From Salpingoeca rosetta (lineage: Eukaryota; Protista; Choanoflagellata): DNA of 64,000 bases. A model generated the notes under the pieces. That model was not told the origin of the DNA, did not search any database, and saw only the letters and a list, made by a program, of their open reading frames with translations. A program made the position numbers and the translations under genes. Shown here piece by piece: positions 15,187 to 16,053 of the stretch. The stretch's first letter is position 1; each line of letters begins with the position of its first letter. The DNA is taken from positions 342,597 through 406,596 of the forward strand of contig JAWQFM010000035.1 of NCBI GenBank assembly GCA_033442325.1, given 5' to 3'.

Positions 15187-16053
15187 ATGGCTGCAACAAG
15201 CAACAAGCAAGCAAGCATGCTTCCATCCCTCAGTTCCGTGTCATGGTTGTTGGTTCTTGTCGTGTGCTACACGACCTTCGTGAGCTCGCATGCGCAGACA
15301 GGGGAAATGAACAGGACCAGCGCCTTCATCTACGTGGATGAGAATCGTCAGATGATCCTCCAGGACAGCGAGGCGCGGTTGTCTTTGAAAGATATGCTCG
15401 AGACGCTCAGCAGCCTCCAGCAGACCGTCTCCACGCTGCAGAGGCACAACGCCGAGCTGAGAAGCACAGTGTCAACCTTAGAAAGCCAGGCTACCGCGTC
15501 AGTGGCCTTCACACGCATTGCGGCCATCACGACAGCAGGCACATACGACGTGACAATCTCCATCAACAACAGCAGCGGACTCCCGTCTTCAGTGCCGCTG
15601 TACGCTGAAGTTGGTGGTGCTGGAGGCGGTGGCGCCAGTCCTTCCGCTGGTGGGGTAAACGGTGCGTCGACGTCGCTGGTGTGTCCCTCCATGGCGATGA
15701 TGTGGCTCAAGGCAACGGGCGGAGTTGGGGGCGACTATCTTGGACCGGGCGGTGCTCACGGGTCTGGGGACATTGGGCCGATTCGCTTGGTGGGGCGTGG
15801 TGGGGACGGTGGTGTTGGCGGCGGTGGCAGCGCTGGCAGTTATCGCGTTCCCACCATATCAACTGGAGTAGATGGCGGCAATGGTGGGTACGCAGCTGGG
15901 GTATTTCAACTCACAGCACCCGTGCAGCAGCTTCAGGCTGTCGTTGGGGCGGGAGGGAGAAGTGCAGACCGGTATGCTCAGGACGGATCAGACGGCTTCG
16001 TCATCTTCCATTACCCACAAGGCATGGACATCACCATCACAAACGCCGCCTGA
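15187..16053 (+). CDS. Secreted glycine-rich protein copy 1: signal peptide, coiled coil, polyglycine domain (phage tail fibre / ALK-LTK glycine-rich like); intronless
   Basis: Hydrophobic N-terminus (likely start 15217, MLPSLSSVSWLLVLVVC), heptads LSSLQQTVSTLQRHNAELRSTVSTLESQ, then YAEVGGAGGGG...GGNGGYAAGVFQ...VGAGG...DGSDGFVIFHYP. A clear paralogue lies at 25225-26139. Confidence 0.88.
   Translation: MAATSNKQASMLPSLSSVSWLLVLVVCYTTFVSSHAQTGEMNRTSAFIYVDENRQMILQDSEARLSLKDMLETLSSLQQTVSTLQRHNAELRSTVSTLESQATASVAFTRIAAITTAGTYDVTISINNSSGLPSSVPLYAEVGGAGGGGASPSAGGVNGASTSLVCPSMAMMWLKATGGVGGDYLGPGGAHGSGDIGPIRLVGRGGDGGVGGGGSAGSYRVPTISTGVDGGNGGYAAGVFQLTAPVQQLQAVVGAGGRSADRYAQDGSDGFVIFHYPQGMDITITNAA

Follow-up and report, generated by a model that had tools for sequence, protein, structure and literature searches.

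The closest described counterpart of the proteins considered here is gp24 of cyanophage Pam3, a fibre protein that combines a trimeric helical stalk with a tumour necrosis factor (TNF)-like sandwich and a glycine-rich domain (PMC9608196). In this domain, six loops carry 12 glycine motifs, which pair to build a lattice from conserved loop stems, and the variable distal tips of the loops have been proposed to bind the host receptor; the protein resembles both gp38 of Salmonella phage S16, over 52 C-alpha atoms, and the ALK of C. elegans (PMC9608196). The gp38 adhesins of T-even phages have themselves been described as possessing five glycine-rich motifs and four hypervariable segments, the latter determining receptor specificity (PMC3157838). 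Here we describe a family of proteins from choanoflagellates, two of which are encoded in a stretch of 64,000 nucleotides of the Salpingoeca rosetta genome (contig JAWQFM010000035.1, positions 342,597 to 406,596; hereafter, the window), and whose C-terminal head has its homologue in the receptor-binding tips, of the Pfam Gly_rich_2 type, that phage tail fibres carry. While the fold and the phage family were already known, the eukaryotic, secreted-type coiled-coil version of the phage head appears to be new.

The head domain and its structural relatives

The two genes of the window, both lacking introns, and the head domains that they encode are located as follows:

15187..16053, + strand: gene 1 (P0001), an open reading frame in a single exon, 288 residues, stop codon included
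25225..26139, - strand: gene 2 (P0002), an intronless paralogue of gene 1, 304 residues, stop codon included
15493..16050, + strand: TNF-like, glycine-rich C-terminal head of gene 1, residues 103-288 (186 residues)
25228-25800, - strand: head domain of gene 2, residues 114-304, with a cysteine in loop 1 and another in loop 4

The genes are paralogues, gene 1 matching gene 2 at 25234-26031 on the minus strand by tblastn with 46% identity (E 8e-47). An AlphaFold 2 (AF2) model of the gene 1 head, computed from a 38-sequence alignment, contained 13 beta-strands and had a mean predicted local distance difference test score (pLDDT) of 93.2 and a predicted template modelling score (pTM) of 0.89. Its long, confident segments that the Dictionary of Secondary Structure of Proteins (DSSP) algorithm assigns neither to helix nor to strand coincide with the glycine motifs. 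For the head, the confident prediction is a TNF-like beta-sandwich with its strands extended into hairpins rich in glycine, and not the polyglycine-II sandwich of gp38 type that had been suggested by an earlier reading of this DNA made from the letters alone (the sequence-only reading).

We then aligned the head model to all 48,161 representative chains of the PDB, taking two lists of the best 50 matches. The best match was the Pam3 fibre protein gp24 (7YPX; Z 8.1, root-mean-square deviation (rmsd) 2.8 A over 119 residues, 24% identity), followed by a tail-tip chain of mycobacteriophage Bxb1 (9D93; Z 7.6, 117 residues, 31% identity), with generic and TNF-family beta-sandwiches coming after these at Z 5-6. 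The match to Pam3 and Bxb1 carries weight, because it is precisely phage fibre heads rich in glycine that occupy the first places and because independent searches agree. A Foldseek search against the viral models of BFVD returned 35 matches at E<=1e-3, the best of them to a protein of Pseudomonas phage Itty13 (1.8e-10); most of these belong to tailed phages, as tail-fibre proteins or proteins labelled 'glycine-rich domain-containing', and some come from giant viruses. In the ESM Atlas, the feature neighbours shown were all Uroviricota clusters, one of which is annotated as PF21722, and the four closest by structure were viral clusters, the PF21722 cluster aligning with a template modelling (TM) score of 0.70 over 154 residues. 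When Foldseek was applied to the PDB there was nothing at E<=1e-3, yet Pam3, Bxb1 and LTK already stood at the head of its weak matches. Searching the PDB by sequence, whether with the protein or the 38-sequence profile, yielded coiled-coil or chance matches only; the profile search did not find the ALK/LTK chains.

Judged from the models, the likeness to Pam3 gp24 and the Bxb1 tail tip would embrace the whole design: a helical oligomerisation stalk, a TNF-like sandwich and glycine hairpins with conserved stems and variable tips. There are nonetheless clear differences from Pam3 gp24 (7YPX/7YFW). The window protein is encoded by a eukaryote and has a predicted signal peptide as well as N-glycosylation sequons; it possesses a beta-hairpin and a GCN4-like coil in place of the trimeric helix bundle with which the phage protein docks onto the baseplate; and its head has four hairpins, equivalent to eight glycine half-motifs, as against the six loops and 12 motifs of the phage.

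The resemblance to T-even gp38 (T2, T6 and S16) is organisational only: glycine motifs alternate with four variable segments in the window head, as they do in gp38, and in both cases the domain lies at the distal end of a fibre-like protein. However, gp38 has no beta-sandwich core, and the window protein has no domain for attachment to gp37. The structure of S16 gp38 (6F45) was not among the best 50 in either list, no match to the gp38 family was obtained in Pfam or in the PDB sequence searches, and the sole trace of gp38 was the viral model of a Synechococcus phage syn9 protein named 'Gp38' (E 1.4e-4, TMq 0.39). The analogy with phage receptor-binding proteins that was drawn from the sequence alone is therefore upheld through homology to Pam3-type fibre heads, but not in the form of a gp38 polyglycine-II sandwich.

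That reading had also pointed to the glycine-rich part of the ligand-binding region of the receptors ALK and LTK. Here the likeness is of the same kind but weaker. The ALK/LTK TG region (PF12810) interleaves a TNF-like sandwich with a glycine-rich lattice, as the predicted head may do, and its matches span residues 5-177 of our model, at Z 5.1-5.5 (rmsd 2.5-3.3 A, 99-106 residues, 21-23% identity), a range of Z that is shared with unrelated TNF-like sandwiches. Unlike these receptors, the window protein has no EGF-like module, no transmembrane segment and no kinase, and would be a soluble coiled-coil protein. More distantly, collectins, members of the C1q/TNF family and the fibre proteins of Bdellovibrio (8OK3, 8OKH) also use an oligomerising stalk to present C-terminal recognition heads, and Bdellovibrio fibre tips and TNF-family members appear in the structure lists at Z ~5. 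This is, however, a generic likeness between sandwiches that have no sequence relation, and the glycine hairpins are absent from those proteins.

Relatives in choanoflagellates, phages and bacteria

The proteins nearest to those of the window are the S. rosetta 'hypothetical proteins' PTSG_05356, PTSG_02680 and PTSG_08778. S. rosetta has at least five paralogues, which are distributed over four large contigs, plus a relic, and further members were found in the transcriptomes of Salpingoeca macrocollata, Hartaetosiga balthica, Choanoeca perplexa and one other EukProt species. In line with the sequence-only reading, which proposed a diversified secreted family with a coiled-coil stalk, the sequences and the AF2 models place a signal-peptide-like segment and a predicted stalk ahead of the head. 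We note that two of the public gene models look wrong: that of PTSG_02680 (P0004) is missing the last third of the head and has ~147 extra N-terminal residues, and that of PTSG_08778 (P0006) has ~70 extra residues ahead of its signal-peptide-like segment. In the searchable literature we found no account of a choanoflagellate family with this domain, of these PTSG genes or of PF21722.

Of 1.84 billion representatives, just 45 reached E<=1e-3 in an exhaustive HMMER search whose profile was made from choanoflagellate sequences alone. These comprise choanoflagellate proteins, proteins from short environmental contigs, the product of one bacterial chromosomal gene (P0015), many phage-like proteins, at E 1.8e-10 to 1e-4, and a few repeat proteins that match short stretches of the profile only. 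The environmental relatives share the architecture of signal peptide and coil. Against this same profile, the phage homologues scored 45-58 bits; when shuffled, their scores averaged -8 to -22, with a maximum of 15, and when reversed they were negative. The order of the glycine motifs, moreover, is fixed across the 38-sequence alignment.

The only Pfam family matched by the head is PF21722 (Gly_rich_2), which is found in 28/38 relatives with a best E of 2.7e-11. Thus, of the two kinds of glycine-rich family that had been named from the sequence, phage and ALK/LTK, the Pfam scans returned one, with both window copies remaining below its threshold, whereas PF12810 (ALK/LTK) was absent from the scans of the window proteins and their relatives at E up to 10. 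Matches to PHROG fell in tail-fibre, tail-fibre-assembly and minor-tail families, and the genomic positions of two phage homologues are those of tail-fibre genes: one (P0016) comes immediately after Baseplate_J and Tail_P2_I in a P2-like myophage, with the sheath and tube genes following it, and in a siphophage the other (P0012) is found downstream of the tape-measure gene.

The bacterial chromosomal gene (P0015; L004 477-1280) sits beside pepN and an FKBP gene, and its product groups with the prokaryotic and phage sequences in the tree described below. Its N-terminus is hydrophobic and resembles a signal peptide, its coiled coil is short and its head is of the Gly_rich_2 type, an architecture which implies that the stalk-and-head design exists outside phages, in bacteria.

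For 38 head domains, excluding P0004 because its gene model is truncated, we inferred an unrooted maximum-likelihood tree. A branch with support of 91/93 separates the phage and bacterial sequences from a eukaryote-type side made up of eight choanoflagellate sequences, seven unassigned sequences and one fragment, and the four copies from S. rosetta that it includes group together with moderate support (87/79). A single origin within an ancestor of these eukaryotes, or a single transfer into it, is in keeping with this topology. Horizontal acquisition, which had been raised as a possibility from the sequence, would be compatible with both the distribution and the tree, with phages, bacteria or giant viruses as possible donors. 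Neither the donor nor the direction of transfer is established, because the tree is unrooted and relatives exist in giant viruses.

Glycine-rich heads were seen in the BFVD models of several giant viruses that infect eukaryotes, namely Satyrvirus, Edafosvirus, Hyperionvirus, Hokovirus, Fadolivirus and the Bandra and Powai lake megaviruses, and in some cases collagen-like repeats are joined to the head. These viruses may form a bridge from the phage or bacterial versions to those of protists.

The unusual composition of the domain limited other searches. A tblastn comparison of choanoflagellate and phage-like heads with 50,697 phage genomes gave no match, which is probably the effect of the low-complexity filter and not a sign of absence. 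Similarly, a pattern search of metagenome contigs, blinded by glycine-rich composition, produced 600 pattern matches of which none was confirmed, and a word-indexed protein search that took the full-length alignment as its query was swamped by glycine words and recovered four known members only.

Conserved motifs and variable loops

All of the glycine motifs quoted in the sequence-only reading, including DGSDGF.IFHYP.GMDITIT, are present in both copies and in the same order, as that reading had stated. Between them lie four variable loops, located in gene 1 as follows:

15634..15657, + strand: variable loop 1, residues 150-157
15733..15747, + strand: variable loop 2, residues 183-187
15823..15870, + strand: variable loop 3, residues 213-228, the part of the model with the lowest confidence (block pLDDT 67)
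15958..15981, + strand: variable loop 4, residues 258-265

The loop sequences that had been read off by eye also proved correct, save for small differences at their boundaries; examples of tips that differ between copy 1 and copy 2 are ASPSAGGV versus GGGSGCVSNGQ and DYLGP versus NSAYSITKA, and single-copy examples are VRDSFKA in copy 2 and DRYAQ in copy 1. Taken together, the four loops are identical between the copies at 5/31 positions (16%), with 18 gap columns, as compared with 94/147 positions (64%) and 3 gap columns in the rest of the head, a contrast that is partly circular because the loops were defined by their variability. Across the 38 family members, the same four positions are the main sites of insertion and deletion, alongside two further gap-rich stretches.

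In sequence order, each variable loop sits between two conserved glycine motifs, which are in turn flanked by beta-strands. One such hairpin reads as the strand YAEV, the motif GGAGGGG, the tip, the motif G..G.S and the strand TSLV. In the model this order of loops and motifs is the hairpin arrangement described for Pam3.

As had been noticed at the outset, gene 2 has a cysteine in both loop 1 and loop 4. The same pair of cysteines is present in the S. rosetta paralogues P0003 and P0006, and both are missing from P0001, P0005 and P0007-P0009. This pattern, which amounts to one correlated loss in one clade, weakly suggests that neighbouring tips are linked by a disulfide, which would form in an oxidising compartment.

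Between gene 1 and gene 2, the scaffold of the head has 0.31 nonsynonymous substitutions per site (dN) and 1.49 synonymous substitutions per site (dS, saturated), giving a ratio omega of ~0.2 and showing that the scaffold is under purifying selection. The value of dS, ~1.5, also means that the duplication is old. For the loops dN is 1.22 and dS is not computable; because synonymous sites are saturated, positive selection on the loops is neither shown nor excluded.

N-terminus, beta-hairpin and stalk

The full-length gene 1 protein was modelled by AF2 from a 16-sequence alignment, with a mean pLDDT of 82.7. Ahead of the head domain, the model and the sequence indicate three features:

15187..15294, + strand: predicted signal peptide or signal anchor, residues 1-36, with a hydrophobic core at 20-33 and a cleavage-like site S-H-A|Q
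15322..15378, + strand: conserved beta-hairpin module, residues 46-64, AF2 strands 47-50 and 56-60
15385..15486, + strand: coiled-coil stalk, residues 67-100, a single AF2 helix of 34 residues

The signal segment was read from the sequence; AF2 places a helix at 15-37, and the paralogues have equivalent hydrophobic N-termini. No hydrophobic segment follows at the C-terminus; both the 288-residue and the 304-residue protein end with the head domain. The window proteins are probably secretory-pathway proteins, as predicted from these sequence features. A conserved N-x-S/T sequon (N42-R-T in gene 1) precedes the beta-hairpin, the motif of which, I-Y-x-D-x-x-G-x-M-V-L-x-D-S, is kept in the S. rosetta paralogues and recurs in similar form in other eukaryote-type members.

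In the stalk of gene 1, L74, V81, N88 and V95 occupy position a of the heptads, while L77, L84, L91 and L98 occupy position d. The asparagine at the N88 position, within the motif N-A-x-L, recurs in 5/5 S. rosetta paralogues. This clean heptad pattern with an asparagine explains why the full-length window proteins give weak coiled-coil matches of the bZIP/Jun type. According to the rules derived from GCN4, beta-branched residues or asparagine at a, combined with leucine at d, favour a parallel dimer. The heptads of the stalk, with valine, leucine or asparagine at a and leucine at d, are GCN4-like in this sense and would favour the same parallel dimeric arrangement. The length of the stalk differs between paralogues, from ~34 to ~90 residues.

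Transcription of gene 1

Gene 1 is transcribed. RNA reads cover 15327-16363 at low depth in one of three RNA-seq runs from a 2026 study that carries the same species label, whereas the other two runs have no reads over the gene. In all of these reads the first mate lies on the minus strand, the signature of plus-strand RNA in common stranded libraries; they contain no splice joints, and they extend the 3' untranslated region at least 310 nt beyond the stop codon. Transcription is weak and perhaps conditional: since the three runs are similar in size, the presence of reads in only one of them suggests expression that is specific to a condition or cell type.

Genomic surroundings

Both window genes are stand-alone eukaryotic genes, having neither a module of phage tail genes around them nor an adjoining chaperone gene. 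They lie within a 739-kb contig; G+C in the window is 52-62%, and the DNA between genes is filled with (CA)n/(GT)n microsatellites. A remnant of a further copy and a related non-coding sequence are located at:

35937..36054, - strand: truncated relic of a third local copy, reaching only from GGAAGAFQLTAPVQQLQAIVGAGG onward and abutting a GT/CA microsatellite
16463..16598, + strand: non-coding stretch 3' of gene 1, with a blastn counterpart 3' of the relic (84% identity)

The relic matches gene 1 by tblastn at 81% identity over 27 residues (35974-36054, minus strand) and by blastn at 83% over 106 nt, and consists of ~118 nt of head-domain coding sequence fused to the microsatellite. The counterpart of 16463-16598 occupies 146 nt at 35683-35828 on the minus strand, ~110 nt downstream of the coding part of the relic; none was detected beside gene 2 in the same blastn search. 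Upstream of gene 1 there is an intronless gene on the minus strand (11996-13441) whose 481-residue product has an N-terminal domain followed by armadillo-like repeats.

Discussion

Our analysis suggests a simple model for how such a protein might work. Four of the connections between strands of the sandwich would be drawn out into long glycine-rich hairpins, with the conserved glycine motifs acting as paired hairpin stems packed in a rigid lattice and the four variable segments forming the tips, which may lie together on one face. The coiled coil could gather two or three heads, and the variable tips would then make up a multivalent ligand-binding surface. Paralogues that differ in their tips and in the length of their stalks would recognise different ligands. 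The likeliest class of ligand may be a bacterial surface structure, bound in the course of prey capture, sorting or sensing. Taken jointly, the architecture, the homology to fibre tips and a ligand-binding role for the loop tips make up the account that, on balance, we hold to be probable. A bacterial target for the heads, taken alone, is a more tentative suggestion. It is favoured because the phage homologue sits at the position of host recognition and because the organism eats bacteria.

Several of our observations weigh against this account. The structural scores, Z 7.6-8.1, are only middling, and phage homologues were part of the alignment behind the model. The window copies score below the 24.3-bit threshold of PF21722, at 9.2 bits for the domain of copy 1 and 16.2-18.9 for that of copy 2. 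The stalk has a dimer-type pattern, whereas trimers are formed by the Pam3 fibre and by TNF-like heads. Relaxed constraint explains the fast evolution of the loops equally well; gene 1 is weakly expressed, with reads in a single run out of three; and the giant-virus relatives, together with the unassigned environmental members, leave the route and direction of transfer open.

Some of the same observations would be accommodated if proteins of this fold and architecture bound an endogenous ligand instead, acting in the matrix, the theca or cell-cell signalling, whether as TNF/C1q-like ligands or by binding a choanoflagellate surface molecule. TNF-family ligands and ALK/LTK do appear at Z ~5, ALK and LTK are known to use such a domain to bind a host cytokine (PMC9608196; bioRxiv 10.1101/2023.11.25.568672), expression in one of three runs looks condition-dependent, and the GCN4-like dimeric heptads are unlike phage trimers. 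Nevertheless, in both sequence and structure phage fibre tips are clearly closer to the head than ALK/LTK or TNF are, no match to PF12810 was obtained, and several paralogues with divergent tips look like a recognition repertoire and not like a single signalling ligand; on these grounds we consider an endogenous ligand rather unlikely, while treating it as a serious alternative. True membership of the T-even gp38 adhesins, with a polyglycine-II sandwich like that of Salmonella phage S16, has far less to commend it. The organisation into four variable segments between glycine motifs is the same (PMC3157838), the syn9 'Gp38' model gives a weak match, and Pam3 gp24 itself resembles S16 gp38 over its 52 C-alpha atoms (PMC9608196), but 6F45 is absent from both top-50 lists, no Pfam family of gp38 type is matched, and the predicted domain is built on a 13-strand beta-sandwich that gp38 lacks and is not accompanied by a gp37-attachment domain. 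We therefore reject membership of the gp38 family as very improbable.

Two more sceptical explanations concern the nature of the genes themselves, and we regard both as effectively refuted, with only a negligible chance of being right. Given that the nearest non-choanoflagellate relatives of known context are from phages and bacteria, the genes could in principle reflect contamination or a very recent insertion. They are, however, embedded in a large contig with microsatellites of eukaryotic type and share the G+C of their surroundings; the five diverged paralogues lie on four large contigs, at least three further choanoflagellate genera have homologues in their transcriptomes, and the proteins have eukaryotic signal peptides and conserved N-glycosylation sequons. 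Along with the RNA reads, the dS of 1.5 between the local copies, which marks an old duplication, completes the case for genes that belong to the choanoflagellate. The domain might alternatively be a low-complexity, glycine-rich structural segment with no defined fold, the conservation of its motifs being a matter of composition, and it is true that its glycine content left most standard searches swamped or blind. Against this stand the AF2 model, with its pLDDT of 93, and the controls by shuffling and reversal, as well as the fixed order of motifs in 38 sequences and the purifying selection on the scaffold.

Given the homology of these heads to fibre tips, the range of the glycine-rich fibre head of Pam3 type now takes in a cellular eukaryote as well as viruses and bacteria, and the family is a likely case of a recognition module of viral or bacterial origin being reused by a predator. 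The presence of a TNF-like and glycine-rich fold in the sister group of animals also opens the origin of the ALK/LTK ligand-binding region to a phylogenetic test. A bolder scenario, in which choanoflagellates domesticated a phage fibre head, obtained from phages, bacteria or giant viruses, as a secreted, multivalent receptor for bacterial surfaces that diversified among paralogues and serves in prey capture or sensing, and in which the same pool of domains was the source of the ligand-binding region of ALK/LTK, seems to us improbable as it stands. Choanoflagellates are the closest living relatives of animals, and the receptors by which they recognise the bacteria that they eat or respond to are largely unknown. 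The family described here supplies concrete candidates for this role: it is small and genetically tractable, has the architecture of soluble pattern-recognition proteins, and bears a domain that phages use on bacterial envelopes.

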